In this document: piece by piece, positions 1-15,509 of the stretch | Layout of the letters: each line of letters begins with the position of its first letter | Position numbering within the stretch: position 1 is the stretch's first letter | DNA from: Paramicrosporidium saccamoebae KSL3 | Lineage: Eukaryota > Fungi > Cryptomycota | Direction: 5' to 3' | Length of the DNA stretch: 18,634 nt | NCBI GenBank assembly: GCA_002794465.1 | Contig: MTSL01000092.1 | Coordinates: 1-18,634, forward strand | Notes under the pieces: model-generated | Seen by the model: the letters and a program-made list of their open reading frames with translations, nothing else | The model's database searches: none | Told to the model about the DNA's origin: nothing | Position numbers and translations under genes: made by a program

Positions 1-999
1 CAGGGAACATCCAAAGAGTCGGATGGCACCGCAATGGAGCAAGAAACGGAGCAGAACCCAGAACGGGAGGAGACGGTGGAAATTGACAACGAGGCTCAGC
101 CCTCTGAAGAAAAGATGCTTGTCGAAGGAACTGAGAGACCAACCGAGCCCATTTCGCAAGTTGACACTTCTTTGACTCCAGCCACTCCTGAAGACGACTT
201 TGACCTGCCCAATTGGGACGAAATTGAGGGCAAGACACACGAACTGTCCATGGAACTCTGTGAGCAACTCCGTCTCGTTCTGGAACCGACAAAGGCGACA
301 AAAATGAGAGGCGATTATCGCACTGGAAAACGGCTGAACCTTCGCAAGATTCCCGCTTACATTGCCTCGCATTATCGACGCGACAAGATTTGGCTTCGAC
401 GCACAAAACCTTCCACTCGCGAATACCAAATTACTCTGTCTGTAGATAATTCGCGCTCCATGAGAGGCGGAGCAGGACGGTTGGCGGTTGAGGCGCTAGC
501 CATGACTGCTACGGCACTGAGTCGACTAGAAGCCGGCACAATCAGTGTCACTTCTTTTGGTGAAAGCGCAAACTGTCTACATCCTGCAACTGCTCCCTGG
601 AATACCGATGCTGGAAGGGCTCTCCTCACAAATTTGACCTTTAAGGATGACTCGACCGATGTAGCCTCACTTCTTGCCCTCATCAATGAGGGGGGCGGTG
701 GGTCGGAATGGCAGCTGCACGTCATTCTTTCTGACGGAATCTGTCACGACCACGCGAATCTCGCGCAACTCATCAACGCCGGGCTCCAGCGGCGCATAAT
801 TCACGTTTTTGTCATTCTGGATCCCACAGTTTCCGAGATTAGCCATGTGGAGTATCGCGCAGAAGGCATCAAGATGACCAAGTATCTGGAAACATTCCCC
901 TTCCAATTCTATGTCGTCCTGCGGGATATCCACGCCCTACCTCTGGTCCTGGCTGATGCGATCCGACAATGGTTCGAGACTGTTTCTCTGTTAGATTAG
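1..999 (+). CDS. MDN1: Midasin (AAA ATPase for 60S maturation), C-terminal end: acidic region and VWA/MIDAS domain; 5'-partial
   Basis: The frame is open from base 1 (cag gga aca...), so the ATG at 34 is internal. The protein carries the typical midasin block LCEQLRLVLEPTKATKMRGDYRTGKRLNLRKIPAYIASHYRRDKIWLRRTKP, a MIDAS DxSxS (VDNSRS), ILSDG, and the terminal YLETFPFQFYVVLRDIHALPLVLADAIRQWF. Confidence 0.95.
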   Translation, partial: QGTSKESDGTAMEQETEQNPEREETVEIDNEAQPSEEKMLVEGTERPTEPISQVDTSLTPATPEDDFDLPNWDEIEGKTHELSMELCEQLRLVLEPTKATKMRGDYRTGKRLNLRKIPAYIASHYRRDKIWLRRTKPSTREYQITLSVDNSRSMRGGAGRLAVEALAMTATALSRLEAGTISVTSFGESANCLHPATAPWNTDAGRALLTNLTFKDDSTDVASLLALINEGGGGSEWQLHVILSDGICHDHANLAQLINAGLQRRIIHVFVILDPTVSEISHVEYRAEGIKMTKYLETFPFQFYVVLRDIHALPLVLADAIRQWFETVSLLD

Positions 1000-1198
1000 A
1001 ATGTGTTAGAATAGAATAAAAGTGCAAAGTTTGATGCGGGCCTGTCGAGTGTAAGAGTTCGATGGAAAAGTTGTAGGCACGCCACATGGTGATAAAATGT
1101 GGATTGATCAGAAGTAACAATTAGGCATCACTATGGTTCATGACAGCGGTGCGCAAGTCAGTCCATTATTATCCCTTGTTATCATCATATCAAAATAT

Positions 1199-1271
1199 TG
1201 GAGGACCTGGGCATCGATCCCAGTACCCCTCGCATGCTAAGCGAGTGCTCTACCATTTGAGCTAGACCCCC
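1199..1271 (-). tRNA. tRNA-Ala(AGC): tRNA-Ala, anticodon AGC, 73 nt, no intron
   Basis: The minus strand reads GGGGGTC TA GCTC AAATGGTA GAGC A CTCGC TTAGCAT GCGAG GGGTA CTGGG ATCGATG CCCAG GTCCTCC A. It forms a full cloverleaf with the G3:U70 Ala identity pair and the ATCGA T-loop typical of eukaryotic tRNA-Ala. TTTT follows a few nt downstream. Confidence 0.97.
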
Positions 1272-1420
1272 GATATGGTTATGATAGTATCGTTATTTTG
1301 TGATCCCTATACCGATTAGGTTGCATTACTTGGTTCATGTTTATGACTATGGTGGCGGTTGTAGAGTTGGGAACACAGGACTCCATTAGGTAGTATTCGC
1401 TTATGATTGGCGGCCTCTTA

Positions 1421-1441
1421 CAATCCAATCCAATCCAATCC
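1421..1441. repeat. (CAATC)4 pentanucleotide microsatellite, giving three tandem CCAAT
   Basis: caatccaatccaatccaatcc read directly from the sequence. Confidence 0.85.
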
Positions 1442-1476
1442 AGTCATATTGAGGATGGCAGTCTAAATGTCAAATG

Positions 1477-1627
1477 GTGGGGATAATACCACGGACTTTG
1501 TCAGGCGGAAGAGATGGGAAGGAGAGGTTTGTTTACTTCTGATCCTAGAATAGTATGGACACACATTTCACTGTCCTGAAATACCCAGCAACTAGGTCTT
1601 CTCCAAACTAGGGAACTCTTTCCAAAA
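1477..1627. repeat. Bipartite dispersed element, copy 1 (block A 1477-1514, block B 1599-1627)
   Basis: Block A is gtggggataataccacggactttgtcaggcggaagaga and block B is ttctccaaactagggaactctttccaaaa. Both recur in the same order and orientation at 4984-5156. Confidence 0.9.
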
Positions 1628-2161
1628 GAACTGCTAATCAGTCTTTTATGTCACATAAAGACGCCATATGCTTGAACAACACTAACACACCCATCGAAAG
1701 ATCCTATATTAGAATCCCCAGCGAAGCAATTTGCATTTAATGGACGATAACCTTTATTTTAATCACTTGTATAAGAATCTGTTAAACAGTATCCACTTAT
1801 CATTGGCAAGTCCGACCCAGATAGCAGTCCCACAGGCCAGTTTGGTCATATTAAGAATGGCAGCCCATAAAGAAGCCATATACTTTAATAAGAGCAAGCT
1901 CACTCATCGGCGGAAAGAATTCGCCCTACGCTACCCTGGCCCGGAGTTATACCGAACTCTACAGCATTTCTGGAAAATGCCGTGCAGTAAAGTGAGAGTA
2001 ACAAACCTTTACTGGAAACCCCGGTCTGTTCTATGCTAAACCGTACAGCTACGTAAAGGCAGCATTAATGCGCGCCTAAATAATGTACCCAAGCTCGCTG
2101 CATTCATCCACTATTCCGTAATAGTCAAATGATGACCCCGACCAGGGTATAAGCCACTTTA

Positions 2162-2908
2162 ATGACTCAAGAGGTCTCCAAAGATGTATGATACACTGTT
2201 TGTATGGCTAATAGCTAGATTCTCCAGGCGTTTAGCGAAATTACTGCCGGCCTCAACCGTTTGGGAGCAGCACTCTCCATTCTGGTCTCGGCAACCATGA
2301 CCAAGTCCGTCGATGTTCCGGCGGCCATCAACCCCGTGTTGGACAAGGATTCTGCGACACCGGTCCTCATCACCGAATCAGCGCTCGTGACAGCACCAGC
2401 CACCCCAAAGGCCACCAAGTCTCCAAAGGCAGTGAGGGACCCCAATTTCCCGAAGCGTCCCCTGACCGCCTATCTTCTTTTCGCTCGTGAGCAACGCGAG
2501 ACGATTCAAAAAGAGCATCCCGAGTTTGGATTCCCCGAAGTTTCTCGTCTACTGGGACAGCGGTGGGAGAGTGTTGATAAGAAGAAATATGAGGAAGAGA
2601 ACCAAAAGCTGATGGAGAGTTATCGACGAGATGTGGAAGAGTATCAGAAGAGCAAAACACAGACTAGTGAAGCAGAACAGCCAACTACAGCTGTAAAGGT
2701 CCCCAAAAAGAACAAGAAGAAGGCTGCTGCTGAGACGGTGGGTGTCGCCGAAGCTGTGAATGCTACCGAGGCTGTGAGTGATCGTGCCGGCGATAAGAGT
2801 GTGATAGAGACCATCCCGACTCTTGCGTCATCTGAGGCGGATGTAGAGGCCGTAAAGCCTAAAAAGAAGAAGAACAAAAAGGCAAAGATTGCAGAGGTTG
2901 AAGCATAA
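2162..2908 (+). CDS. HMO1: Hmo1-like HMG-box chromatin protein, join(2162..2185,2219..2908), 237 aa
   Basis: HMG box RDPNFPKRPLTAYLLFAREQRETIQKEHPEFGFPEVSRLLGQRW...YRRDVEEY and Lys-rich tail KKKKNKKAK. Removing intron 2186-2218 gives the N-terminus MTQEVSKD|ILQAFSEITAGLNRLGAAL, which resembles the helical N-terminal part of yeast Hmo1. The HMG-box call is firm; Hmo1 orthology is from recall. Confidence 0.8.
2186..2218 (+). other. 33-nt spliceosomal intron, phase 0
   Basis: GTATGA...GCTAAT...CTAG. It contains an in-frame TGA, and its removal joins ATG 2162 in frame to the HMG ORF. Confidence 0.8.
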
Positions 2909-2945
2909 GTTGTTGTGTTTTGTGAGGCTAGTAATAAGACCCTTT

Positions 2946-3155
2946 ATTGGAATCCCTGGATTGTGGGTGTACTACCTCACACGTTTGTTCGAGTTTACTT
3001 TTTCAATAAAAATTCCATCCTAACCGTTGGTTACTCTAATTGAGGTTGCATTATTGGTTCCGCCTTGAGATTATCCAATCAGGATAAATCTTTCGAAAAA
3101 TGATTCGACCGACTATCCACGTCCAATAGCGTCAGCGAGTAATGGGTCATATAAG
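2946..3155 (+). promoter_or_regulatory. CCAAT-box cluster plus TATA-like element upstream of the 557-aa gene
   Basis: ATTGG at 2946 and 3053, CCAAT at 3075 and 3123, and TATAAG at 3150-3155, 25 nt before ATG 3181. Confidence 0.55.
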
Positions 3156-3180
3156 CGACGTCGATATGGAATAGGCCAGG

Positions 3181-4854
3181 ATGCATGGACTCGGGCTACT
3201 GATAGCATTGCCGCTAGCATTGGCACAGTATGACAGCAAGCCATCATACACGAGTAATGCAAATTATGGATCACAGCAACAAACCTACGGGTCATCACCA
3301 GTTGGAACACAATTTAATACTGGTGCATCCTCACTTGGAGTACCAAAGAGTAATACTTTACCGTCATTCGGAGTGTCATCAATTGGGGCGCAACCAAATT
3401 ATGGTCAACAAATAGGTGCTCAGGCAGCAGGTTTTGGGGGTCCCAATCAACAGAATGGGACGCCATACCCCGAGACCATGCATGGCCGAGGACAACAGAC
3501 GGGTGGTTGGCCGCAGTCAGCCTATGTACCCGGGTCGCCATCGCCAATGTTTCCCCAACCGACAGTCACAGCCCCACCACGTCCTCCGCCGCCCCCACCG
3601 CCACCGAACAAACAAACTGCGGAAGCGCGTCTCGCCTGGCTCGAGTATCTAACCAATGTATATATCCAATGCGAAGATTTTGGTCATGCGCGGAAACTCG
3701 TTGAGGAGATGTATGTGTGGTTAGTGCGCTATCCGAGATTACGTAAGGAAGTGAGTGAGGCAGTGCAGGTACTGCAACAACGCATGGATGCCAGTCGGGA
3801 ATGCAAGTGTAGTGGAGGTCGCTGTAGAGGAAACCAGCAGCCTCATCCGCCCAGGGAAATGATGCCAAAGGGGGACATGACTATGGAGGCAGAGCGAAAC
3901 CTCTATAAAATGATGGGTCACATCCATGCATCATCAAATATTGAGCTGGACTCGAGAGAGAAAGAGACTGTGGAGCAAGTACATCGGATCCTTGGATTAG
4001 GATACACGAGCAATGCAATACATGCGTTTCAGCAACTACGCTCTACAAATCCCACTTTGGTGGACACGGAAACGTATGGGAAGCTTGATTTTGTGCTCAA
4101 AATGGTGCGATTCGATTTGGAGAATCCCGATAATTGCATGCCATTGTGGAAGAGCGACTGTCAGACCAACTGGAGGCGCAAGAGCGATATTCTGGAAACT
4201 TATAATATGTTAAGGAGTACCCCTCCCCAACAGACTCAGTTGCGTGGCGTATTGTATCGGATCGCCCATCTGCCCAATCGTGAAGAGATCCTCACTCGAC
4301 TTTTGGTGGCGGTGGGACGAAATGAAGCTTGGCAGCGCACTCGGGGGCTAAACCGTGCAGATCGATATTTGGCCGAGGCCTGTCTGACCCTGCATGGATC
4401 ACCCCGACCGGGCCGGTTTGATGATGTCGCCACGTGGGAATTCCATATTAATCCCCTCGATGCACGCGCTCACGCCAAACAGATATACGAACGCTGTCTT
4501 CAAGACCACCGTTTGACATCATCTGCCCAATGTCGAGAGGCATTTGGTCAGATCAATGCGCTTGAACGGACCTGTCCCTATGGAGGGTTTGTGCGCATCG
4601 GAACCTTTTCTCTAATATTTGGCGATTATTTGTTTATCAAGTGCCTGGCACCTCCCATGCCGCCTCCGAGCTATTTTTTGCCTCCACGAGCACCGTCTGT
4701 GCCAAGAGATCGCTATCGGAGACGACTGCGGAGACTGTCGAGGCTGCTGCACAGTCTGACTGAACACTTACAAGATGTGGGTGAATATGCCAATACACGC
4801 CGACTACCGGGTCATGAACACATATTAAGTGCAATACGAAACGAATTAGACTGA
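3181..4854 (+). CDS. Predicted secreted protein, 557 aa: signal peptide, G/Q/S/P low-complexity region, polyproline tract, helical domain shared with the 1352-aa protein
   Basis: Long intact ORF. The N-terminus MHGLGLLIALPLALA|QYD looks like a signal peptide, and PPRPPPPPPPP lies at 3574-3606. No family recognised. Confidence 0.85.
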   Translation: MHGLGLLIALPLALAQYDSKPSYTSNANYGSQQQTYGSSPVGTQFNTGASSLGVPKSNTLPSFGVSSIGAQPNYGQQIGAQAAGFGGPNQQNGTPYPETMHGRGQQTGGWPQSAYVPGSPSPMFPQPTVTAPPRPPPPPPPPNKQTAEARLAWLEYLTNVYIQCEDFGHARKLVEEMYVWLVRYPRLRKEVSEAVQVLQQRMDASRECKCSGGRCRGNQQPHPPREMMPKGDMTMEAERNLYKMMGHIHASSNIELDSREKETVEQVHRILGLGYTSNAIHAFQQLRSTNPTLVDTETYGKLDFVLKMVRFDLENPDNCMPLWKSDCQTNWRRKSDILETYNMLRSTPPQQTQLRGVLYRIAHLPNREEILTRLLVAVGRNEAWQRTRGLNRADRYLAEACLTLHGSPRPGRFDDVATWEFHINPLDARAHAKQIYERCLQDHRLTSSAQCREAFGQINALERTCPYGGFVRIGTFSLIFGDYLFIKCLAPPMPPPSYFLPPRAPSVPRDRYRRRLRRLSRLLHSLTEHLQDVGEYANTRRLPGHEHILSAIRNELD

Positions 4855-4983
4855 GATATTATTTATAAATGTATTCTTGTGAGATTGCTGATGATGCATG
4901 AGGGGGGGGGTAACTCGCGTTTAGAGAAAAATTGCTGCGCTGTACAGTGAAGTGAAGTAAAGAGATCATCATAGTGTCGCGTA

Positions 4984-5156
4984 GTGGGGATAATACCACG
5001 GACTTTGTCAAGCGGGAAGAGAACCCGTTCATTTTTAATCCAATGGCCCTTTTATAGTCTCCCAAGTGGCATAGGAATAATCCTCAAGTACTCAGCAAAT
5101 CGATCCATTCTAGCACACAAAGATGTTTTCTCCAAACTGGGGAACTACTTCCAAAA
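4984..5156. repeat. Bipartite dispersed element, copy 2 (block A 4984-5022, block B 5128-5156)
   Basis: The first 27 nt of block A are identical to copy 1, and block B matches at 26/29. The spacer is unrelated to that of copy 1. Confidence 0.9.
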
Positions 5157-5197
5157 AACATGGCAAACAATCCACCACATCACATCTTTATTGAATA

Positions 5198-6028
5198 TTA
5201 AACTGGTATAGCGCAGTCTTTCGGGTCATGTTTAACGGAATTAACAAGCGAGGTGTAGAATTCATTTGACAAATACCGTGGTGGCACGATCCAGGAGCGT
5301 TTTTCGTAGTGATCAAACATTACTCTATTGTGTATTGTCAAGAAGAGCTCGCCTTCTGGTCCCTCCAGGACACAGGTTAACACACCGAAAAAGCTCCGTG
5401 TACACGCATTTCCATCCAGAAACATTGTGTCCTCCCACATCCAAGATCCTCCAAAGCGCATGCGCATTGCGAAAACTTTTACCCCTAGAGCATACCCCAT
5501 CAAGAAGAATGCAATTGTGCCAATGCCGAGAAAGTAACCGGCACTTAGAAGTGCAGCTAGCAATACGAGGGGGATGGCGTCGGTGGACAGAACAATGAGC
5601 CATCCCAGCCACTTGCTATATTCTCGCTCGCGACCAAGAAACACAAATCGTTTCTGTAGGCAGTGCACTTCATCATTCTTATGATAATATCCAAGGACCA
5701 ATACTCTGGGCATCTCCCAAACCGAGAATAAAAATCCGAAATGCTTCCAGTCATGGAGGCCTTCGGCCGCGAGCTGCCCATCGGGACGAAATTTGGCGAC
5801 CACGAAGGAGCGGATGCTGAAGCGCTTGATAATCCAGAAGAGAAAATCGTGCGAAATCAAGCCCACCCAGATGAAGGCGTACATGGTCCAGCCCCAGAAT
5901 GGATAGCATATATTGACGATTGTCCACGCCATGAGCAACAATAAAAACGCATCGATAGTAACGCTGAGACACTTTACCAGTTTTGGGCCAAATGTGCTTC
6001 CCTTAGAGAGTCTAAACGTGAGATACAT
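5198..6028 (-). CDS. Membrane protein, 276 aa, about 4 TM, arranged as two (2 TM + soluble domain) units
   Basis: Two hydrophobic hairpins (VTIDAFLLLL...FLFWII and LSTDAIPLVLL...ALGVKVF), each followed by a soluble segment. The start context agcaATG matches that of 13677. Confidence 0.75.
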   Translation of the reverse strand: MYLTFRLSKGSTFGPKLVKCLSVTIDAFLLLLMAWTIVNICYPFWGWTMYAFIWVGLISHDFLFWIIKRFSIRSFVVAKFRPDGQLAAEGLHDWKHFGFLFSVWEMPRVLVLGYYHKNDEVHCLQKRFVFLGREREYSKWLGWLIVLSTDAIPLVLLAALLSAGYFLGIGTIAFFLMGYALGVKVFAMRMRFGGSWMWEDTMFLDGNACTRSFFGVLTCVLEGPEGELFLTIHNRVMFDHYEKRSWIVPPRYLSNEFYTSLVNSVKHDPKDCAIPV

Positions 6029-6132
6029 TGCTGAGCGGAGAAGTGAGAGTCGGCTCGCATTTGTTACTGTTCAATAGGGGGTGACCCCTAGGCGATGATT
6101 TGTGGGATAGCTTAATTTGGAACAGAGTGGTA

Positions 6133-6415
6133 ATTGGTCAACCGACGGATCTGCCCCGTGGTAGCCCGATCCACTACGCTCAAGTAGCAGTAAACCTTAT
6201 TTGCAATCATCCTCAAATAAGAGCATCTGCCGTATGCTTTAAATTTAATAAGAAAACTCGATTCTCGTGCGTAGATTTTTGTGACACTGCGGGGTATTTT
6301 ACAATTCCGTACCGATTAGCCGTGAAATCTGATTGGAGGAATTTCTTGCCTCCAATCAGTGACAGTCGTTCGACGACGAACAAATGTCTGGACCTGATGG
6401 CGCCGCTCTGATTGG
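6133..6415. promoter_or_regulatory. CCAAT-box cluster in the divergent promoter region
   Basis: ATTGG at 6133, 6332 and 6411; CCAAT at 6352. Confidence 0.5.
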
Positions 6416-6456
6416 ATGGGAATCTTGGATAAGGTCGCCACGGACCGGAATTCAGC

Positions 6457-9400
6457 ATGTTCCGCATGCTGTGCCAACTACTTTTGATATGGCTGGGAAT
6501 GTCGCTGGCCTCGCCACGACACCCGCTGCCAAAATCAAATTTGCAGTCATTCAGCAAATTATCGATTCCGTCAGGCAGATTGGCCGACGATGACTTGGCA
6601 CTGGCTGATACGCCGTTCCGCGAATATGTCGACTATGCCACGTGGACGCAGTATTTAGCCAAGCAGCTGGTAGCCACCGGGGATGTGGCACGACTGTCAT
6701 CAGCAATCAACCGCCTGCAGGCCCTAAACAGCCGTCTCCGGGGGGCGGACGCCGTCTCAGGGACCCAGGCGATAAAGCGTCTTACCCAGGATCTCTATGA
6801 GCTGCGCATCCGATCAGCCAGTCATCACATGAAGTTTGACCCAAAAGCAGAAGAGGTGTACGACCTAATTGAGCACGGCCATTATAACATTGCCAAAGAA
6901 ATGCTACGCAACATTCTCCACCAAATGGATTACATCAAACTAAGTGCATCGTTAAAGAATGTTGTGATTTTGGAAGGACTAATCCAGTATGATGGGCTAA
7001 ATCCCAAGGCTGTACTGTCTATATGGGAGAACATGTGGAATTTGAGCCAGGATGACAAGGTCTCTGCCCTCATCCGCGCCAAGCAACTATGCTCTGCAAC
7101 TCGCTCAGCCGTGGCAGATCCGCACCATCAGAAAGGCTACCGATGCATTTCCCGAACAAACAATATAGACGCTCGAGTTCTCGTTAACCTTGGACAGGAC
7201 GTGACCAAGCAGTTGGGCGAGCCATACATAAGAGACGATCCTGTAGAGCATCGTCTACTGCAGATGGGAATGGCATATATGAACACGGACTATTGTGCTG
7301 CTCAAACGCATATCCGTACGGCATTGCATATGGCCACTGATCAATTGCGCCGGAAAGAGTTGGAGAGAATCGAAAAACGACTTGGAGAGCAGTGCGTCCG
7401 GAAGCAGTTGGATTCGACATATCGCATGTTCTGTCAGGTTGGTCATGAGGCAGCCTTCCCCATAGGAGAGGCCACTGTCACTAATCCCGTGTCTTCCGTT
7501 GTTGCAACGGCAGAACGTACCTTTTGGACACGTATTGCCATTGGCGATTGCATTTCCGCTCGCAGTGATTTGGAGGCCGTCCGTCGTATTGTGCCAACCA
7601 ATATTATCCACCGTCGCGACTATCTCATCAGTCGCATGGAGTTTATGGAAAGTAGGCTGCGCAAATGTCAGCAAGCTCCCGGTCTCTACGCCAATGGATT
7701 TGGACAACGCATTATGGCATTGCTGCAAAATCGCAATTATCAGGGAGCCTATTGGGTGTGGCAGCAGAACCGAAATCACCCCACTGCTGTAGTATGGCGT
7801 ACTGCCATCCTAGTAGCCCGTTATCCAAAGGTCATTTATGCTCCTTGTACTGGAAACAGTCTTGTCACTGGAGTTCCCAACATGGATCGACAACTATTCG
7901 ATCGATTGGAGGCCCTAATGACTGGTCGAAAGTCGAGTTCATGCGTCCATGAGACTGATAAGGAGCTTTGCAACCTCATTTGGATGCGTGCTGCCTATGT
8001 TACTGGAAGACATCGACTTGTACATCATTACGCGAGACAAATCAGCCGCAGTGCAAAATACTGCGACGAGGCTAACCAGCTAATGGCGTGTCAGTTGCTC
8101 TGTTTCAGTGGTCGCGGCTACTCAGAGGCATGTTCCTCCTTATCAAATTATCAAAGTATGAGCCAACAGGTCCGTTCTGCTCCCCACAATGCCATTGGAC
8201 TAGATCTCGCCACTCGACTCTGTCGCTCTTCAAAGCAAATTGTCTTGGATCCGTTTTACATACGGAATGGCCCTACTCCGCGTCCATTAACCTTTCTCTT
8301 CCGACACTATTTTAAACGCTTTCTGTACGATGGGCAAAGGTCTCTCTTTTCTCCTAAAACCAAGATTCATCCCAGCATGCTCGCTTCTCAGTTGAATGGA
8401 AAAAATACTGTACCCTATTCTAGTCCATCCATTAACTATGCAACTCAAAACTCGCAGACCCCGCAGAACTCGCAGAACCGCCCTCCAGGATTCAATACTA
8501 TCACTCACTATGATCAGAACATGCAACCAATCACGGCGACAACGGCCATTTATGGCAATTCTCATCAATCGTCGCCCATTTCTGCGCTGGGTTCCAACCA
8601 AAAGCTTGTCAAGGGCGGTTGGGATCACTATATGGGACATCAGCGCCATCTCGGCAGTTATCAAAACATTAATGCTCCCCAGATAACTGACCAACAGCGA
8701 CGTGCATTGCTACAGGCTCAGGAGCTTTTGTGTCCATGTTTGGCCAAACACAAGGGACTTATGTTCCAGTGTCGACCAGGCCGAGCCGGTGATCGATGCA
8801 GAGCAGCGAAGAGAAGGTTTATGCAGTCATATCAGAGGAAGAATATGAAAAAGGTTTGTAGCAAGCCCAAATGCAGAATAGTGAAAACGAAATGCAAAAA
8901 GGGCGATAAGAAATGCAAATCAACCCGCCGTGTATGCAGCAAGCCCCAGTGTCGACTCATCCCTAAGCATAATAACAAACGGACAAGCAAGGTCTGTGAA
9001 AAACCCAAATGCAAAATGGTCAAGGTTAAATGCAAAAAGGGCGATAAAAAGTGCAAATCGACAAAACGGGTATGCAGCAAACCCAAGTGCCGATCTGTTA
9101 ATGCCGCTGGAAACGCAAAGACTCGAAGAGTTTGTGAAAAGCCCAAGTGCAGGACGGTCAAGGTCAAATGCAAAAAGGGTGATAAAAAGTGCAAGCCGAC
9201 CAAGCGTGTATGCGGTAAGCCCAAGTGTAGATTGGTTCCCGTTACTGGAAATGCAGGGACACGAAGAGTTTGCGAAAAACCCAAATGTCGGACGATCAAG
9301 GTGAAATGTAAAAAGGGCGATAAAAAGTGCAAACCAACTAAACGTGTCTGCAGCAAGCCCAAGTGCAGGATGATCAAAGTCAAAGGCAAAAAGCAATGCA

Positions 9401-10515
9401 AGTCAACCAAACGCGTTTGCAGCAAGCCCAAGTGTAAGGTTGTCAAGGTCAAGTGCAAAAAGGACGACAAGAAATGTAAGCCAACCAAACGCGTCTGTAG
9501 CAAGCCAAAGTGTAAAATGGTCAATGCGGGCCAGTCATGTTCTACAAACACGGCGCCAGGATCGGCCGGAAGCCGGCTGTTTGGAGAAAAGCTGCTAGGT
9601 AATTGTGATGAAGGAGTGAAGCACGCTTACAAAGCCTTCCTGAAACGCACCGGAAGCTGCGATTGCAAGCCGTGCAACAGCAAAGCCTCGGAAAAGTTCC
9701 TTGTAGACAGCCATGCGTTAGAGGTTGCGGCCAAAATGTTTGCCTCTGGCCAATTGCAATGTCCATGTCTCAAGAAGAGTCTTCTTAAAAAGTATGGAAT
9801 CAACTTTGACAAACTCCAAACCGTGAACATTAGGAAAAGTGGCAACTGTACTTGTAAATGCACACGCAAAAACAAAATTGATCCCTTAAAGGAATGGCGT
9901 CTCCAGAAATTCTGCGAGCGAAAGGGCATCAGAAACGGCAGGAATTGTCAGCTATATAGCAAGAAGCTTATGGAAAAGCACATGAAAAAGCTCCGTTTGC
10001 GTCGTGCTAAACTCCGTGCTACATTAAGAGCAAGGATATTAAAGACGGAACGCTGTCGGGCTCATTACCAAAAGCTCGTCAAAGCGCATGTCCAAAAATG
10101 TCGTGCCCAGGAGAAAAAGAGGATGCAAGCAGTGCGTGCTGAGCAGCAGCGCACAATCCGTATGGCTAAAAAACACGAGGCGCTTGCCAGGAAACACATG
10201 ATAATCCAGAAAAAGTGTCTGGCGGGAATGAGGGCACGAATTGCCAAGATTCAGAAATGTGGCTGCCGCAGGAGGTACCAGAGGAGACAAGTAGTTCCGA
10301 GGAGAAGGATCTGCCGCAAAAAGCAATGTAGACGCCGGGCACTGCGAAGAAAGAAATGTGCCCGAGGACGCCAATGTCGTCGACGAATGTTACAACGCAA
10401 TGCTTTCAGACGATCCCTTTATCGCAACAATCCGGCGCTGTTGAGATATCGCAGACCCTTTAATATCTCGCACTACAAACCTATGTATGGACATCCGAAC
10501 AATGCGCATATATAA
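6457..10515 (+). CDS. Large predicted secreted protein, 1352 aa: signal peptide, helical-repeat-like N-terminal half, Q/N/S linker, Cys/Lys repeat array, Arg/Lys/Cys-rich tail
   Basis: 4-kb intact ORF starting MFRMLCQLLLIWLGMSLA|SPR. No family recognised. Confidence 0.9.
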   Translation: MFRMLCQLLLIWLGMSLASPRHPLPKSNLQSFSKLSIPSGRLADDDLALADTPFREYVDYATWTQYLAKQLVATGDVARLSSAINRLQALNSRLRGADAVSGTQAIKRLTQDLYELRIRSASHHMKFDPKAEEVYDLIEHGHYNIAKEMLRNILHQMDYIKLSASLKNVVILEGLIQYDGLNPKAVLSIWENMWNLSQDDKVSALIRAKQLCSATRSAVADPHHQKGYRCISRTNNIDARVLVNLGQDVTKQLGEPYIRDDPVEHRLLQMGMAYMNTDYCAAQTHIRTALHMATDQLRRKELERIEKRLGEQCVRKQLDSTYRMFCQVGHEAAFPIGEATVTNPVSSVVATAERTFWTRIAIGDCISARSDLEAVRRIVPTNIIHRRDYLISRMEFMESRLRKCQQAPGLYANGFGQRIMALLQNRNYQGAYWVWQQNRNHPTAVVWRTAILVARYPKVIYAPCTGNSLVTGVPNMDRQLFDRLEALMTGRKSSSCVHETDKELCNLIWMRAAYVTGRHRLVHHYARQISRSAKYCDEANQLMACQLLCFSGRGYSEACSSLSNYQSMSQQVRSAPHNAIGLDLATRLCRSSKQIVLDPFYIRNGPTPRPLTFLFRHYFKRFLYDGQRSLFSPKTKIHPSMLASQLNGKNTVPYSSPSINYATQNSQTPQNSQNRPPGFNTITHYDQNMQPITATTAIYGNSHQSSPISALGSNQKLVKGGWDHYMGHQRHLGSYQNINAPQITDQQRRALLQAQELLCPCLAKHKGLMFQCRPGRAGDRCRAAKRRFMQSYQRKNMKKVCSKPKCRIVKTKCKKGDKKCKSTRRVCSKPQCRLIPKHNNKRTSKVCEKPKCKMVKVKCKKGDKKCKSTKRVCSKPKCRSVNAAGNAKTRRVCEKPKCRTVKVKCKKGDKKCKPTKRVCGKPKCRLVPVTGNAGTRRVCEKPKCRTIKVKCKKGDKKCKPTKRVCSKPKCRMIKVKGKKQCKSTKRVCSKPKCKVVKVKCKKDDKKCKPTKRVCSKPKCKMVNAGQSCSTNTAPGSAGSRLFGEKLLGNCDEGVKHAYKAFLKRTGSCDCKPCNSKASEKFLVDSHALEVAAKMFASGQLQCPCLKKSLLKKYGINFDKLQTVNIRKSGNCTCKCTRKNKIDPLKEWRLQKFCERKGIRNGRNCQLYSKKLMEKHMKKLRLRRAKLRATLRARILKTERCRAHYQKLVKAHVQKCRAQEKKRMQAVRAEQQRTIRMAKKHEALARKHMIIQKKCLAGMRARIAKIQKCGCRRRYQRRQVVPRRRICRKKQCRRRALRRKKCARGRQCRRRMLQRNAFRRSLYRNNPALLRYRRPFNISHYKPMYGHPNNAHI
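8854..9540 (+). repeat. Coding tandem array of ten VCxKPxC units alternating 26 aa and 20 aa (46 aa / 138 bp higher-order period)
   Basis: The long unit is e.g. VCEKPKCRTVKVKCKKGDKKCKPTKR and the short unit e.g. VCSKPKCRSVNAAGNAKTRR. One unit is 23 aa and the last is partial. Confidence 0.95.
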
Positions 10516-10516
10516 A

Positions 10517-10586
10517 GACTAACACGTACTAACATGTAATAATACGTAATAACATTTGCCAATATTTACTAACATCTACTAACACT
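10517..10586 (+). repeat. Degenerate 10-bp tandem array with TACTAAC core, immediately after the stop codon
   Basis: In-phase units: gactaacacg, tactaacatg, taataatacg, taataacatt, (tgccaatatt), tactaacatc, tactaacact. Confidence 0.75.
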
Positions 10587-10719
10587 AAACACTGGATGCT
10601 AGACACTATTTATCAAACATAAAGCCTAGCCCTCGCATTAAAACTATGAATATGTATACGGGCTAGGGATTTCAATAGTCATAATTTTAACTTTAAGCTC
10701 GCATGAATTTTGTTGTATG

Positions 10720-10792
10720 ATTGGAGCAAAACTTGTCCAATGGAATTCCGGGTGCAGCATTGTCATTGGATGTTGACATTTGGGACGCCAAT
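10720..10792 (+). promoter_or_regulatory. CCAAT-box cluster upstream of the 225-aa gene
   Basis: ATTGG at 10720 and 10765; CCAAT at 10737 and 10788. Confidence 0.55.
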
Positions 10793-10823
10793 AAATCAGT
10801 CATTGCCATTGCAGCTGTCAGCC

Positions 10824-11501
10824 ATGAAAGTACTCGCCATACTTCCACTTTGCCTTTCCACAGTATACTGTTCCACTTCCGGCAGTAATCCACTCTCGGC
10901 GCAACCCAGCAATCTCCCGCCAAATCAAAATGCTTACGATTTAGACGCTCGTTTTGGTGCCCCCGACAGTGATTCTCTCGCCATCGATCGTCTTCGCCAG
11001 AAAGGAAAACAACTTCTCTCTTCATGTCGGACGCCCCGTCATCCCGAAGATACTCGCTTTGAGCGCGAAATAACCAAGATGCGTTCAATGATCCAAAAGA
11101 ATGCACATGAAGAGCGCAACTGCAGCCATAAATGGAGAGGCATGATGCCAGCAAGTCTGGTGAGAGCCTATTTGCATTACCTAGAATGGCAAGATAAATG
11201 GCTAGGAAAGCTGATGGGACGTCTCCAGGGCTCATCATGTAAAGGGAGCGCTGCCTTGGTTAGGGAACCGCCCAAGTATCAAGAAATTTTACGACGAGAT
11301 GGAATGCAGGTAAAGCGCAGGACAGTGCGTAGACGAGGTGCTGTCCGTGGGAAACTTGTCCGTCGTGTAGTACGCGTAAAAAGGACATCTGGAGGAAGCT
11401 ACTCATCTGGCGGATCCAGCTACAGTACATCCGGTGGTTCAGCTAGCGGCTCAGCTAGCATGTCTACTGGTGGTTCCGTAAGGGGAAACCCACGCATGTA
11501 G
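10824..11501 (+). CDS. Predicted secreted protein, 225 aa, with an Arg-rich tract and a G/S-rich tail
   Basis: The first in-frame ATG followed by a signal peptide is at 10824 (MKVLAILPLCLSTVYC|STS). The protein contains VKRRTVRRRGAVRGKLVRRVVRVKR followed by SGGSYSSGGSS. Confidence 0.8.
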   Translation: MKVLAILPLCLSTVYCSTSGSNPLSAQPSNLPPNQNAYDLDARFGAPDSDSLAIDRLRQKGKQLLSSCRTPRHPEDTRFEREITKMRSMIQKNAHEERNCSHKWRGMMPASLVRAYLHYLEWQDKWLGKLMGRLQGSSCKGSAALVREPPKYQEILRRDGMQVKRRTVRRRGAVRGKLVRRVVRVKRTSGGSYSSGGSSYSTSGGSASGSASMSTGGSVRGNPRM

Positions 11502-12066
11502 GCAGCCTTGTAAGATAAAGTATTTATTTTGATTTGATTCAGTCGCATAGTGAGGTAAGTACTATAGTCTCTGCCGAATGGGATGATTTTGCATTTCTAA
11601 AATTAAACTTTTAAAGAACAAGAACAATCACGGATACAGCCAAATGTAGACTTGTTCCTCCACGTAAGTGTTTAGCTAATCATTCTATTAGTCTGCAGTA
11701 TGGTACTTGTTTGTGTGATGCAAATCTACTCATAATGACTTTATTAGCAGCGCCCTTTAATAGAGCCATCCTTTGGAAGTCTCAAAGTTCCGTGTCGTGC
11801 ATGGTCGAGATCACAAGCAATGTATATCACACTGATAGTTTTGATCGGCTTTCGATTCTCCAAATCCTCACCTCACTTTACGGTTAGAGTCGCTCTTGGG
11901 TTTGCTATATACCACCCCACCGGCTGATATTCTACACTCAAATCAAATTCAAACCCCGCTTAAACACGATTATAAAGTTTTTTGTAAGACTTTAATTATT
12001 TGCACGATTGGGCTGATTTGAGGCAAAGGGTTTACTATGGCCTTTATGTTCTTGAGTACTAATCCT

Positions 12067-13316
12067 CTATATCTTTATGCCTGCTACTTTTATTACTAAC
12101 ACGTCTGGCATCTTTGCCGCCGGTCTCTGCGTCTGCATTAGCGTTAGTGACATCATTATTGCTAACACAAACACAGAGACCGACGGTAAAAGTGACAAAC
12201 GCAGTGATAATAAGCAATCCGAGTGCGTTAATCCGCGGCCCATCGTGCGATATCGGCAGGTCTCGCATTTCCTAGCCCGCGAGTTGATGTGCCACAATGC
12301 CTCCTCTGCCTTTTGAAGGGCCTTCCCTTTATTGGCAGGCCGGAATCCACACAACCGGCATTCTGCATGGTCCCCCTTCAGGTACCAGCGCTCCAGCCGG
12401 GGCCCGCTGGATTGCTCGGGTACTGGGCTGGGGGGACTACTCTCCAGAGACTCTGAGATTTTGTCTTCTAGATTTGAAGGAGAATCATCCTTCTTGGGGG
12501 GCTTTGGCAGATGGGCCTCCACCCAGGGATCTGCGGCATGTACAGCAATTATTGCTCTACACAGCTCCTGCCCCACTTCGCGGCCTACGCGCCCAAGAGC
12601 CAGTAATGTGAGGTCCCGTTTTAGTTCGGGACTAAGCACATCATGGGACCAGATGTACTCGACTGCAGCGAGTATCTCAGCCTCACTCGTCCCACTGCAC
12701 TGTTTGAGCACGATGGCACACTCGACAAACCACCGGCGATAATCGGCGGCTTGGGTTGGCTCAACAAAAAGCAACAGCGCGGCCTTCTTGCCAAAGCTTC
12801 CCACGTTGTTGAGCTTTAGCCCGTGGAGGCATTCACGTTTGAAGTCTTCTAGGCCGAGCTTGGAACACTTGTCCCATGAGCTCCAGGGGGAGCTCACGAA
12901 TCAGTGATTCGTCTATTCCTCGGTAATTCTTGATGGCAATCTACAAAAATAAGCAATCTTGAATTATGGCAAACTTTCAATGCTTGGTTAAAAGTTACCG
13001 CCGCATCCCATGACCCTTCGGGATGCATCTCTTTCAACATTCCATCGAGCTGGGTCTGCTGACGATGCTTGCACGTGAGACAGCCCCACAGCGCTCCAAG
13101 GGCGACCAGCACTAAAGCCGCTCCAATCCCGAAAGACCAAAGAGCCCCATCCGTTGCAGCAACCGGCCCACAGAACAGCACCACGAGACAGGACATGAAT
13201 CCCAGAATGCTCAGCCATCCGCCCCTCTCTTGTACACTTACCACACCAGCAATGAGGGCCCCCAGCCCAGTCGCACAAGCACAGATCAGAGCAAAGACAA
13301 TGGCAATGACATTCAT
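12067..13316 (-). CDS. Probable single spliced gene, complement(join(12067..12848,12898..12940,12999..13316)), 380 aa: 3-TM N-terminus, helical region, Cys/His putative Zn-binding motif
   Basis: ORF 12894-13316 gives three hydrophobic helices. ORF 12067-12897 has no ATG start and carries CRLC...H...CETC. Two GT-AG introns (58 nt and 49 nt) join the two in frame. The exon structure is inferred. Confidence 0.5.
12089..12214. repeat. 126-bp ungapped degenerate palindrome (fold-back)
   Basis: Position i pairs with 24303-i. Of 62 positions, 43 are Watson-Crick, 16 differ by transitions and 3 by transversions. Confidence 0.9.
12849..12897 (-). other. Candidate 49-nt intron, phase 1
   Basis: GTGAGC...CCTAG; the 3n+1 length restores the frame into ORF 12067-12897. 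The branch site is weak (GCTCAT) and two AAG would have to be skipped. Confidence 0.35.
12941..12998 (-). other. Candidate 58-nt intron, phase 0
   Basis: GTAACT...GCTTAT TTTTGTAG, AT-rich relative to the flanking coding sequence. Confidence 0.6.
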
Positions 13317-13349
13317 GCAGTATCTGCTGACCCGTGGTCGAGGCCGAGG

Positions 13350-13357
13350 TATTTATA
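13350..13357 (-). promoter_or_regulatory. TATA box
   Basis: TATAAATA on the minus strand, 33 nt before ATG 13316. Confidence 0.6.
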
Positions 13358-13430
13358 GAAAGAAATTCATGCAGTATCCATGCAATGCGGGCTAGAGTTG
13401 GAGTAGCTACAAATACAATTAAGCTCATAA

Positions 13431-13595
13431 CCAATAGCTTAATATTAAATGCCAATACCTATTATAGTTTGGTTTAGCTCTAGGGGCACTGATTGGTCGT
13501 GCTTGACTTTAATCGTCCAGCCAATCATCCCACTGCTTTACAATTCAAATATGCGCAACGTCCAATAACATTCACTGAATCACTAGTCCTATTGG
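13431..13595. promoter_or_regulatory. Six CCAAT boxes in the divergent promoter region
   Basis: CCAAT at 13431, 13452, 13521 and 13562; ATTGG at 13492 and 13591. Confidence 0.6.
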
Positions 13596-13676
13596 ACACG
13601 GCCAGGGCGATACCAGTGAAATCCGATATACAAGACCACTACCTCATCACTCACTAGAGCCAAACTGACAGGAGCA

Positions 13677-15509
13677 ATGAAGCTGCTAATATTGCCACTT
13701 CTTTCATTGTCATTTTGCTGGGCCTGTACCCAGGGTCAACGGAGGGCGCTCCGACCACCACCGCCATTTAATATCCGATCGGGTGTAATCCGCGAACTTA
13801 CCGATGACGGAAACTCGGACGATGAGCAGATGAACCAGCCGGCCAAAATGGCCCGTGATGCTACCAAAATTGTGGAACGCTTTGGCAGCTGTCATGACAA
13901 AAAGCGTCACAAGTGTCTATGGTACAAAATGCAAGTGCATACAAAACATTCAGGGGATCCACCAGCCCCACGGATGCCTTGTAAGGAGAGGATGCAGGCT
14001 ACAATGAGATCTATGGATTGGCGCAGATGGATAAATACGGCTGCGTCGCCTGAGGATCGGCGGACGTTCTGGCGGTATTCCGGCAGAGCCCGTGGGGTCC
14101 ATGGTCAAGAAAAGTGGGACAGAACTTCTCAATCAGGACAGGATAGCTCGTATGGTTGGAAAACAATGGCTGGGCAGAGCCGAGGCGGCCAAAGAAATGA
14201 GTGGCTCAGGCAGTCTCTCCCCGAGCAAAAGTTGAACCGAGCCTCTTCCAACTACCAGACTGCTGGTGGTCAAAAAGTGATTAAGCAAGCAATTGACAGC
14301 CAGAACTTTGAAAAGTTTATGCGGTATTTGAAACGGAAAATGGCTAGCCACACAACCACTACAGGCAGTCAAAAAAAAGAGGGAGGATCGTACCTGGACA
14401 GAAATCTCCAACAGGACGATCCACAATTTATAGAGTACATGAAAAAACGCTTTTACCTCTTGAAGAATGCGCAGAAATATATTCGCGGAATGAAAAAAAA
14501 GATGCATGGTATGCTTAAGCTTCACCAAGAGCACGACTGCAAGGAACAAACCAAGGCAATCTCTGGAGGCAGCAAGAAATTGATAGCACACATTGACAAG
14601 TTACTACGCACCCATCGATCCCAAACACGTCGTGTCCATCAGAAACATTGTCGTGGCGTCATTGTGCATTTCTTGCACGATGTGGATAGAGTTCTAAATC
14701 ATATGCAAAAGAAACAGTCGTCTTATGAGGACATGATGAAGACCTGGCTTCAGCTGAGCTATCAGCAAAAGCAGGAGCTATATCGGATACTGTTGGCAAA
14801 CCAAATGCGCGATATGCATCGTGTGCTCCGGTTACGCAATCTCGAGGTTTGGTATTCTAAAAAGGTGCATCTCCTCGACCTCCAAACTCGCCAAAGACTG
14901 CAACAGATTATCCGGGCCCTAAAATTGCAGGAGCAACAGTTTCAGGATGCTCTTTGGGAGCGTCTGAAGCACCTGCAGCAGAGTGCTGACGAGTGGACAA
15001 AACATGAGGCAACCTACAAAAGGGTTCTTTTAGAAATGAGTAGGCAGCAGAAATTGTTGATGGAAATGAATCTTAAACAGAGTCAACAGATCCAGCGTCT
15101 CTCTGAATTTACGCAAAACATTCCAACTCGGTGTGGAATGATGGGTGGATCCGTGGGAGAAGCATCAGTAGGTAGATCTATGGGAGCAATGTCAATGAAT
15201 GGGTCCATGGGATCGACATCAATGGGCAGATCCACGAGACTGGAGCCAGCAACATCAACGGGCGATCAAGATGAATGTAATGATTACATCTTGCCTCCAG
15301 CAGCGGAACGTCGCCAAAATGCAATTGTGAAACAGTTAAAGCAGCTAAAGATCCGTCGCCATGGTGCACTTCGCTCCAAAATGTGCGCAATTCGATCCAT
15401 TGGCAAAACCCTGGCAAAACCGCTAAATGACGACGACAAGAAAGTCTCTGCCAAACGTAGGACCAAGAAGACTAGAAAGACAAGGAAGAAGAAACATTCC
15501 CTCTTCTAG
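13677..15509 (+). CDS. Predicted secreted basic protein, 610 aa, coiled-coil-like, with an M/G/S-rich segment and a polybasic C-terminus
   Basis: Starts MKLLILPLLSLSFCWA|C. It has a Q/L/K/R-rich helical middle and ends KKVSAKRRTKKTRKTRKKKHSLF. Confidence 0.85.
   Translation: MKLLILPLLSLSFCWACTQGQRRALRPPPPFNIRSGVIRELTDDGNSDDEQMNQPAKMARDATKIVERFGSCHDKKRHKCLWYKMQVHTKHSGDPPAPRMPCKERMQATMRSMDWRRWINTAASPEDRRTFWRYSGRARGVHGQEKWDRTSQSGQDSSYGWKTMAGQSRGGQRNEWLRQSLPEQKLNRASSNYQTAGGQKVIKQAIDSQNFEKFMRYLKRKMASHTTTTGSQKKEGGSYLDRNLQQDDPQFIEYMKKRFYLLKNAQKYIRGMKKKMHGMLKLHQEHDCKEQTKAISGGSKKLIAHIDKLLRTHRSQTRRVHQKHCRGVIVHFLHDVDRVLNHMQKKQSSYEDMMKTWLQLSYQQKQELYRILLANQMRDMHRVLRLRNLEVWYSKKVHLLDLQTRQRLQQIIRALKLQEQQFQDALWERLKHLQQSADEWTKHEATYKRVLLEMSRQQKLLMEMNLKQSQQIQRLSEFTQNIPTRCGMMGGSVGEASVGRSMGAMSMNGSMGSTSMGRSTRLEPATSTGDQDECNDYILPPAAERRQNAIVKQLKQLKIRRHGALRSKMCAIRSIGKTLAKPLNDDDKKVSAKRRTKKTRKTRKKKHSLF

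Follow-up and report, generated by a model that had tools for sequence, protein, structure and literature searches.

Two short repeats with common ends and unrelated interiors in Paramicrosporidium saccamoebae: possible relics of a small mobile element

Defective DNA transposons and variants of long terminal repeat (LTR) elements hold their termini in common around unrelated insides, and the region upstream of tRNA genes is a classic landing zone for fungal LTR elements. The present analysis concerns a pair of non-coding repeats of ~200 bases, at 1464-1656 and 4971-5185 of an 18,634-nucleotide window that is the entire contig MTSL01000092.1 (assembly GCA_002794465.1) of Paramicrosporidium saccamoebae (Rozellomycota). 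The repeat was examined as two copies (n = 2) on this one 18.6-kb contig. P. saccamoebae is a rozellid parasite that lives in the nuclei of host amoebae, and its genome is compact, with a gene space of 76% and repeats making up only 0.53%, mainly simple ones (PMC5701793). Nothing specific was found in the literature on transposable elements in this organism. The two copies are read here, tentatively and with somewhat less than even confidence, as what is left, now inert, of a non-autonomous mobile element of the P. saccamoebae lineage that was non-coding and short, at about 190-210 bp.

The repeat is real, its two collinear copies agreeing far beyond chance (Table 1). A preliminary description, made from the letters of this DNA alone, had reported two blocks, A and B, that occur twice in the same order. 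Both are recovered at the positions it gave, in the same order and orientation, block A with 31 of 32 positions matching in BLAST (1477-1508 versus 4984-5015, E 9e-11 within the window) and the core of block B with 26 of 29 (1599-1627 versus 5128-5156, E 3e-4 within the window). The core of A is identical at all 27 positions (1477-1503 and 4984-5010). The blocks stand, but the extent drawn around them was too short: homology runs from TGTC (1468/4975) to TCACAT (1656/5185) and takes in a third collinear block, C, which lies between A and B with its tail. The A run that had been taken to close each copy (1622-1625; 5151-5156) is present but internal to the unit, as the homology goes on for 29 nt beyond it. 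The spacers had been described as failing to align, which remains true of the 59 and 58 nt between A and C but not of block C itself (15/19, P about 0.001). The 21-nt difference in their lengths, previously likened to about two turns of the helix, resolves instead into one discrete indel of ~22 nt between C and B. Profile searches, run separately for A, for C+B and for the complete unit, detect no third copy in the window and no copy at all across 36 kb of related loci. Exact-pattern scans for block A, alone or together with B, give no match in JGI metagenomes, GTDB genomes or IMG/VR.

The two copies have A in common towards the 5' end and C and B towards the 3' end, whereas their interiors, V1 and V2, are unrelated. 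No similarity between V1 and V2 is detectable in either orientation (P 0.64-0.78), and compared in register they are 16% identical, with most of the differences being transversions. Plain drift would leave the middle about as similar as the blocks, so the interiors must have differed from the outset. The identity levels in the window, 89% for the 37-mer pair described below, about 71-96% for the blocks and random-like with a transversion excess for the middles, likewise argue that the difference is structural and not the product of decay. Inversion of the middle segment between copies is ruled out by the absence of similarity to the reverse complement, and hypermutation of the middle by the transversion excess and the 16% identity. 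Two mechanisms fit interiors that were unrelated from the start: a mobile-element family with different masters, or a patchwork built by template switching.

Copy 1 can be delimited through its flanks. Deletion of exactly 1464-1653 (190 bp) joins them into a 37-mer that matches 1845-1881 at 33 of 37 positions without a gap, so copy 1 is a discrete insertion, exact to the base at site 1. Each half of the 37-mer occurs at two sites only in the window, against chance expectations of 0.03 and 0.07, and none of 80 random pseudo-elements treated alike gave a junction-spanning match (0/80). The empty site used here is a paralogous stretch and not an orthologous locus. The insertion unit so defined at site 1 and the unit of homology to site 2 agree within 3-4 nt at each end. 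A boundary at 1462-1651 scores equally with 1464-1653, and the junctions can be read in three ways. The most parsimonious relative to the paralog is a 190-bp insertion without target duplication. A second places TG...CA ends at 1468-1655 between TAAA and TAAA (or TA), and requires a 2-bp indel, an extra difference from the paralog; a third invokes a duplication of CAGTC plus 10 nt of filler. This ambiguity follows from the position of the junctions within short motifs that are repeated and nearly palindromic: the ends carry ATGTCAAAT and ATGTCACAT, and GTCTTTTATGT lies opposite ACATAAAGAC. The 37-mer is itself a 37-bp non-coding local duplication of 89% identity in unrelated surroundings, one copy of which is split by copy 1. 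It carries ATG on both strands, and its open reading frames (ORFs) are short and not conserved in relatives. A short (CCAAT)4 microsatellite, CAATCCAATCCAATCCAATCCAG, lies directly to the left of the split copy at 1421-1443.

Comparison with related gene arrays provides a second view of the insertions. The relatives are environmental contigs, L008 (ENA), L007 (Logan) and L002, with L003 and L005 for a relocated gene taken up below. The closest relatives in the searched protein collections share about 50-65% amino-acid identity, and protein searches found no P. saccamoebae paralogs. Contig L008 carries, in order, the midasin end, a small nucleolar RNA (snoRNA), tRNA-Ala(-), the HMG gene and orthologs of the 557-aa and 1258-aa proteins; L007 runs from the HMG gene through the 557-, 1258-, 290- and 610-aa orthologs, and L002 has the 557- and 1258-aa orthologs. 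The gap between the tRNA and HMG genes measures 857 bp in the window versus 403 bp in L008, and that between the 557- and 1258-aa genes 1645 bp versus 371-646 bp in the relatives. In the syntenic gaps of L008, L007 and L002 the element is absent, and these gaps hold no paired intergenic repeat of their own. A discrete unit has thus entered an array of ancient synteny at two of its intergenic gaps, and both insertions appear, on this comparison, to be additions specific to the P. saccamoebae lineage.

Copy 2 occupies a 343-bp gap between the convergent genes 3181-4854(+) and 5198-6028(-), 13 nt from the stop codon of the latter. The convergent arrangement had been noted before and holds, the second gene being conserved in spite of its absence from the deposited annotation. 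Its full-length homologs in JGI and Logan metagenome contigs reach 57-65% identity (E to 1e-105), clearly indicating a real conserved gene. In the relatives the homolog of 5198-6028 adjoins that of 12059-13316, as its neighbour in L003 and L005, and is absent at the position of copy 2, which places copy 2 at a synteny breakpoint beside a relocated gene. No element follows the stop codon of this homolog in the contigs that carry it. Measured against L007, the window has ORF 5198-6028 inserted before the 1258-aa gene (4855-6498) and gene 12059-13316 inserted after the 290-aa gene (11888-13676); since the two inserted genes are adjacent in L003 and L005, a local rearrangement around the 1258/290 gene pair is implied. 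Capture of 5198-6028 between two element ends is ruled out, as nothing resembling a second end lies in 6029-6498. Tandem duplication of a gene segment is also ruled out: the genes flanking the two copies are unrelated and not paralogs, so the repeat is not a duplicated gene segment. A run of ~10 G occurs at 4901-4910, in the 3' region of gene 3181-4854 and ~65 nt before copy 2.

If the copies are relics of a mobile element, they would descend from different masters of one family, in which only the terminal ~50-80 bp had to be kept and the interior was free to be replaced. The termini would have been retained through recognition by the mobilising machinery, and conserved ends around unrelated interiors fit subfamilies that share their ends. 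Counting in favour of this reading are the coincidence of the insertion unit with the homology unit, the TG...CA termini, the TAAA flanks, the nearby tRNA gene and the preservation of block order and spacing. Both copies end as solo LTRs do, with TGTCAA...GTCACA at 1468-1655 and TGTCGC...ATCACA at 4975-5184. Together with the TAAA flanks of copy 1, these ends would by analogy most resemble those of a solo LTR, or else an LTR-type end of very short length. No competing explanation is offered by an RNA family, a fold or an ORF, and the copies probably have no present function.

Several observations weigh against a mobile-element origin. Read in the same register, the flanks of copy 2 are ATAG and TCTT and show no duplication, and at copy 1 the TAAA duplication costs an extra 2-bp difference from the empty-site paralog where the reading without duplication costs none. 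Terminal inverted repeats are not significant in either copy (best end-to-end scores of 5 and 6, null mean 5.0). No autonomous partner, primer-binding site or polypurine tract is seen in the window. With repeats at 0.53% of the genome, any family must be small, and two members just 3.5 kb apart look local rather than dispersed. Finally, V1 and V2 are nearly equal in length (59 and 58 nt) despite their unrelated sequence, which the mobile-element model does not predict. Neither leading explanation does so.

Assignment to a known class was approached through the diagnostic features of each. The earlier suggestion of a relic like a short interspersed nuclear element (SINE) or a miniature inverted-repeat transposable element (MITE) came closest to the evidence, in that a discrete 190-bp insertion at lineage-specific sites is present, but a tRNA-like head, inverted ends and a consistent target duplication, which define those classes, are missing. 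A target duplication of fixed length at every copy, as for MITEs and other elements with terminal inverted repeats, is not found: inspection of both copies, proposed at the outset as a check, yields a readable TAAA/TAAA at copy 1 only and none at copy 2, and the empty-site comparison favours none. A terminal direct repeat of 14/18 flanks copy 1 only (P about 0.02) and conflicts with the empty site. Similarity to tRNA-Ala reaches P 0.03 in copy 1, in an alignment that takes in flank, and P 0.95 in copy 2, and neither copy has an Rfam match to a SINE head derived from tRNA, 5S or 7SL RNA; a head derived from the adjacent tRNA-Ala is ruled out, its similarity not being significant. Helitrons, which have 5' TC and 3' CTRR with a subterminal hairpin and insert between A and T, are excluded by the host junction GTC^CAT (or CAG^CAC) and the 3' end ...TATGTCA. 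A spliceosomal intron or introner is likewise excluded, as the boundaries 1464-1653 and 1462-1651 lack GT-AG on either strand; the closest GT...AG pair, on the minus strand from 1654 to 1463, removes 192 nt rather than 190. The ORFs around copy 1 are at most 46 aa long or not conserved in relatives, and neither copy lies inside supported coding sequence. Nor can the two copies be the LTRs of one 3.7-kb element, since the two enclosed genes are syntenic in relatives and the outer flanks (TAAA versus TCTT) differ. Among the hallmarks tested, those of MITEs (inverted ends, consistent target duplication), SINEs (a polymerase III head), Helitrons, introners and C/D snoRNAs are lacking and only the TG...CA termini of LTRs are present.

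The main rival explanation, rather unlikely in itself, is a local patchwork duplication during repair or replication, of the template-switching, microhomology-mediated break-induced replication (MMBIR) or end-joining type, without a mobile element. In the same joint and rather unlikely account, a break at site 1 would have been filled with A, C and B copied from 3.5 kb away (or both sites from a third locus), together with an inverted piece of the neighbouring snoRNA. The decayed local duplication that the preliminary description had set against its own proposals stays alive in this form. The absence of a target duplication under the most parsimonious boundaries is consistent with it, as is the distance of only 3.5 kb between copies in a genome with 0.53% repeats, and the 37-mer constitutes a second small local duplication, 190 bp away. 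A candidate for the inverted piece is TTGTTTACTTCTGATC (1529-1544) in V1, which on the opposite strand agrees at 16/17 positions with the guide plus box D of the snoRNA, at a distance of 420 bp, and the chained similarity of copy 1 to the snoRNA unit reaches z=4.15. The insertion closes at its right junction with 11 nt (GTCTTTTATGT) that repeat the neighbouring flank (ACATAAAGAC) as its reverse complement, both junctions show CAGTC...ATGTCA, and copy 2 sits at the synteny breakpoint adjoining the relocated gene. The patchwork account is harder to reconcile with blocks A, C and B keeping their order, orientation and near-exact A-to-C spacing (59 versus 58 nt), which is unexpected for a polymerase leaving and re-entering its template. 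For the greater part of V1 and the whole of V2 no local source can be detected, the small matches are individually weak (P 0.02-0.08), and templated insertions of such size and complexity are uncommon.

The snoRNA invoked above merits description because of its likeness to copy 1. The minus-strand segment 1103-1193 starts a few bases past the run of T behind tRNA-Ala, forming a tRNA-snoRNA tandem, and is predicted to be a canonical C/D box snoRNA with box C AUGAUGA, D' CUGA, C' UGAUGC and a guide plus box D (CUGA). L008 has the same sequence, CCTAATTGTTACTTCTGATC, for the guide and box D together, and the terminal stem covaries, with UUGA/UCAA in the window versus GGA/UCC in L008. Rfam returns sub-threshold full-length matches only, all of them to C/D families (snoR23, snR54, snR56). 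The 5' part of copy 1, read on the plus strand, is weakly collinear with the minus-strand snoRNA unit from 1200 down to 1000, with ATGATGA of the snoRNA pairing with ATGGTGG of copy 1, GGGATAATA present in both, AGTGATG pairing with AGAGATG and TTGTTACTTCTGATC with TTGTTTACTTCTGATC. The chained alignment gives z of 3.4-4.2 (P 0.0007-0.003 by shuffling) and was equalled in 0/400 real-sequence controls, and the 13-mer GGATCAGAAGTAA is also conserved in L008. From this likeness one could propose that the repeats are decayed duplicates of the C/D snoRNA gene unit (snoRNA plus 3' flank) beside tRNA-Ala that have lost box C, an origin we consider improbable. The best real-sequence control scored 92.0 versus 92.5 observed, several comparisons having been tried, and the similarity of copy 2 to the snoRNA is not significant (P 0.24-0.33). 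Box C is non-canonical in both copies, box D occurs in copy 1 only, and no poly(A) tail closes the snoRNA-like part. The likeness of copy 1 to the snoRNA unit is suggestive only.

Selection on a cis-acting DNA element (a protein-binding module, origin, insulator or terminator) with a fixed A-to-C spacing would account for the strongly uneven conservation, with a 27/27 core beside random-like sequence, for the nearly equal spacing (59 versus 58 nt) and for the intergenic position of both copies. Such an element, which takes in the bipartite binding site, origin or chromosome element of the preliminary description, is a still more doubtful candidate, given its absence from the same gaps in the three relatives with conserved gene order, where no comparable repeat pair is seen either. 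The gene contexts also differ, copy 1 lying upstream of a tRNA and the HMG gene and copy 2 between convergent 3' ends; copy 1 interrupts a sequence as an insertion does, and it is implausible that two elements like origins or centromeres would lie within 3.5 kb of each other. A layout like the CDEI-II-III of point centromeres is rejected on the same spacing of two units and on a middle that is not AT-rich.

An expressed, structured non-coding RNA (ncRNA) family, offered in the preliminary description, has very little to recommend it: the conserved ends of the unit enclose a variable stretch of constant length, in principle a possible guide-like cassette, and small hairpins do exist in A and B, but the folding statistics and consensus folds lend these hairpins no support, Rfam has no match at E<=10, and the unit is not conserved in relatives. 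At gathering thresholds Rfam reports the tRNA only, so that the search suggested as a check matched no known family, and a relaxed search (E<=10) of 1000-6500, and of either copy by itself, adds nothing relevant, its single hit being a 12-bit match to a bacterial small RNA (E 7.9). Folding energies of both strands of the copies show no excess stability against shuffles (z +0.89, +0.59, +0.51 and -0.61), and consensus folding of the copies reaches no more than -16.8 and -12.9 kcal/mol over ~200 nt, which is weak, and shows no shared fold. The 'compensatory' pairs occur only in the unalignable middle, where two sequences are uninformative. No polymerase III boxes or terminator are common to both copies. 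On the plus strand copy 1 reads AUGGUGG ... CUGA and copy 2 GUAGUGG without a box D, neither having a terminal stem; an H/ACA or C/D snoRNA on either strand is ruled out by motifs inconsistent between copies. Look-alikes of RNase P/MRP CR-I, U4 and 5S seen by eye have no Rfam support. Coding potential is absent, with ORFs of at most 33 aa within copy 1 and an indel in block A that breaks any common frame. Equally remote is a functional cassette whose arms, A and C+B, hold an exchangeable interior of fixed length (58-59 nt), which might be an RNA that carries a guide, or else a mobile element whose insertion is site-specific, precise and free of target duplication; to our knowledge no such cassette-type element has been described in early-diverging fungi.

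Table 1. Positions of the repeat copies, their parts and flanks, and the other features of the window.
Feature	Positions	Strand	Basis
Copy 1, insertion unit, 190 bp	1464-1653	+	Flank-joining test; homology to copy 2 at 1468-1656
Copy 2, register-equivalent unit	4971-5185	+	Alignment to copy 1; homology at 4975-5185
Block A, copy 1	1468-1514	+	42/47 identical to 4975-5022, 1-nt indel
Block A, copy 2	4975-5022	+	Alignment with 1468-1514
Variable middle V1, copy 1, 59 nt	1515-1573	+	Without similarity to V2
Variable middle V2, copy 2, 58 nt	5023-5080	+	Without similarity to V1
Block C, copy 1	1574-1592	+	15/19 identical to 5081-5099; local alignment, P about 0.001; new to this analysis
Block C, copy 2	5081-5099	+	Local alignment with 1574-1592
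Extra ~22-nt segment between C and B, copy 2 only	5100-5122	+	Gap in pairwise alignments
Block B plus tail, copy 1	1594-1656	+	45/63 identical to 5123-5185, core 26/29
Block B plus tail, copy 2	5123-5185	+	Alignment with 1594-1656
Left flank 'a' of copy 1, first half of split 37-mer	1443-1463	+	Match to 1845-1881
Right flank 'b' of copy 1, second half of split 37-mer	1654-1669	+	Match to 1845-1881
Uninterrupted paralog of a+b, 'empty site' for copy 1	1845-1881	+	33/37 ungapped versus joined flanks
Midasin MIDAS domain end	34-999	+	Annotated
Predicted C/D box snoRNA, unannotated	1103-1193	-	Box motifs, comparison with L008
tRNA-Ala(AGC)	1199-1271	-	Rfam, above gathering threshold
HMG box protein	2129-2908	+	Annotated
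557-aa protein	3181-4854	+	Annotated
Predicted conserved membrane-protein gene, 276 aa, multi-pass	5198-6028	-	ORF; absent from deposited annotation
1258-aa protein	6499-10331	+	Annotated
Gene	10824-11887	+	Annotated
Gene	12059-13316	-	Annotated
Gene	13677-15509	+	Annotated
Long ORF	15663-18509	-	ORF, beyond the annotated part covered

The deposited annotation was covered for positions 1-14854 of the contig. The midasin gene is cut by the contig start, leaving the C-terminal MIDAS/VWA domain only (1-999), which is annotated as a separate 321-aa protein. Two further proteins contain internal repeats of their own. Within a 1352-aa secreted-protein ORF (6457-10515), positions 8854-9552 encode 5-6 tandem 138-nt (46-aa) Lys/Cys-rich units (KKGDKKCK.TKRVCSKPKC...) that match no Pfam family. 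Gln/Ala-rich degenerate repeats (AEAQRLAQQQAAQM...) lie at 17755-18160, near the N-terminus of the 948-aa signal-peptide protein 15663-18509(-).

The significance of these observations is modest: even in a repeat-poor, 7-Mb rozellid genome, a gene array that is ancient in other respects has recently acquired small insertions at two places. One insertion point coincides with a gene relocation and so offers a handle on how compact parasite genomes rearrange. If copies exist genome-wide, Paramicrosporidium would have its first defined family of interspersed repeats; if there are no further copies, the pair would be a clean natural example of patchwork templated duplication. The annotation of the contig gains one missed conserved gene (5198-6028) and one missed tRNA-linked snoRNA (1103-1193), both as predicted here.

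Among described systems, the snoRNA-derived retroposed or duplicated copies of mammals (snoRTs) share with copy 1 a 5' part that is collinear with a snoRNA, including the guide plus box D. Unlike snoRTs, the repeat has no poly(A) tail and no clean target duplication, and has lost box C; copy 2 is without significant similarity, and the unit is twice the length of the snoRNA. Introner-like elements resemble it in their precise insertion without target duplication and their length of ~200 nt, but GT-AG is missing at the exact boundaries here and neither copy is in supported coding sequence. Template-switch insertions (MMBIR, fork stalling and template switching (FoSTeS) and polymerase-theta end joining) also arise without target duplication; their junctions show short repeats and the flank copied in inverted form, and their pieces resemble sequences within a few kb in either orientation. 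They differ in that 190 bp is above their typical size, and in that here the source order and spacing are kept and the interior is mostly without an identifiable template.

The solo LTRs of fungal LTR retrotransposons, such as the yeast delta and sigma elements near tRNA genes, are closer in several respects. Like these, both copies have TG...CA termini, are a few hundred bp or less in length, and are intergenic without coding capacity; copy 1 is surrounded by a 4-bp TAAA repeat and lies ~200 bp upstream of a tRNA gene. In contrast to them, copy 2 lacks a flanking duplication, neither copy has significant inverted ends, and the 18.6-kb contig shows no full-length element or internal sequence for this repeat; LTRs of one family align throughout, whereas the interiors of the two copies are unrelated. 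Defective DNA transposons, as exemplified by Ds1-type derivatives and MITE subfamilies, differ in having significant terminal inverted repeats and a consistent target-site duplication, and the copy number of the present repeat must be low. They match the P. saccamoebae copies in their small size, in their discrete insertion and in terminal tens of bases that are kept around an unrelated interior. Taken as a whole, the unit behaves most like a solo LTR or like a defective transposon derivative that has only its termini in common with a master. For the present it is best entered as an insertion repeat of low copy number, unclassified but belonging to a general kind that is already known.

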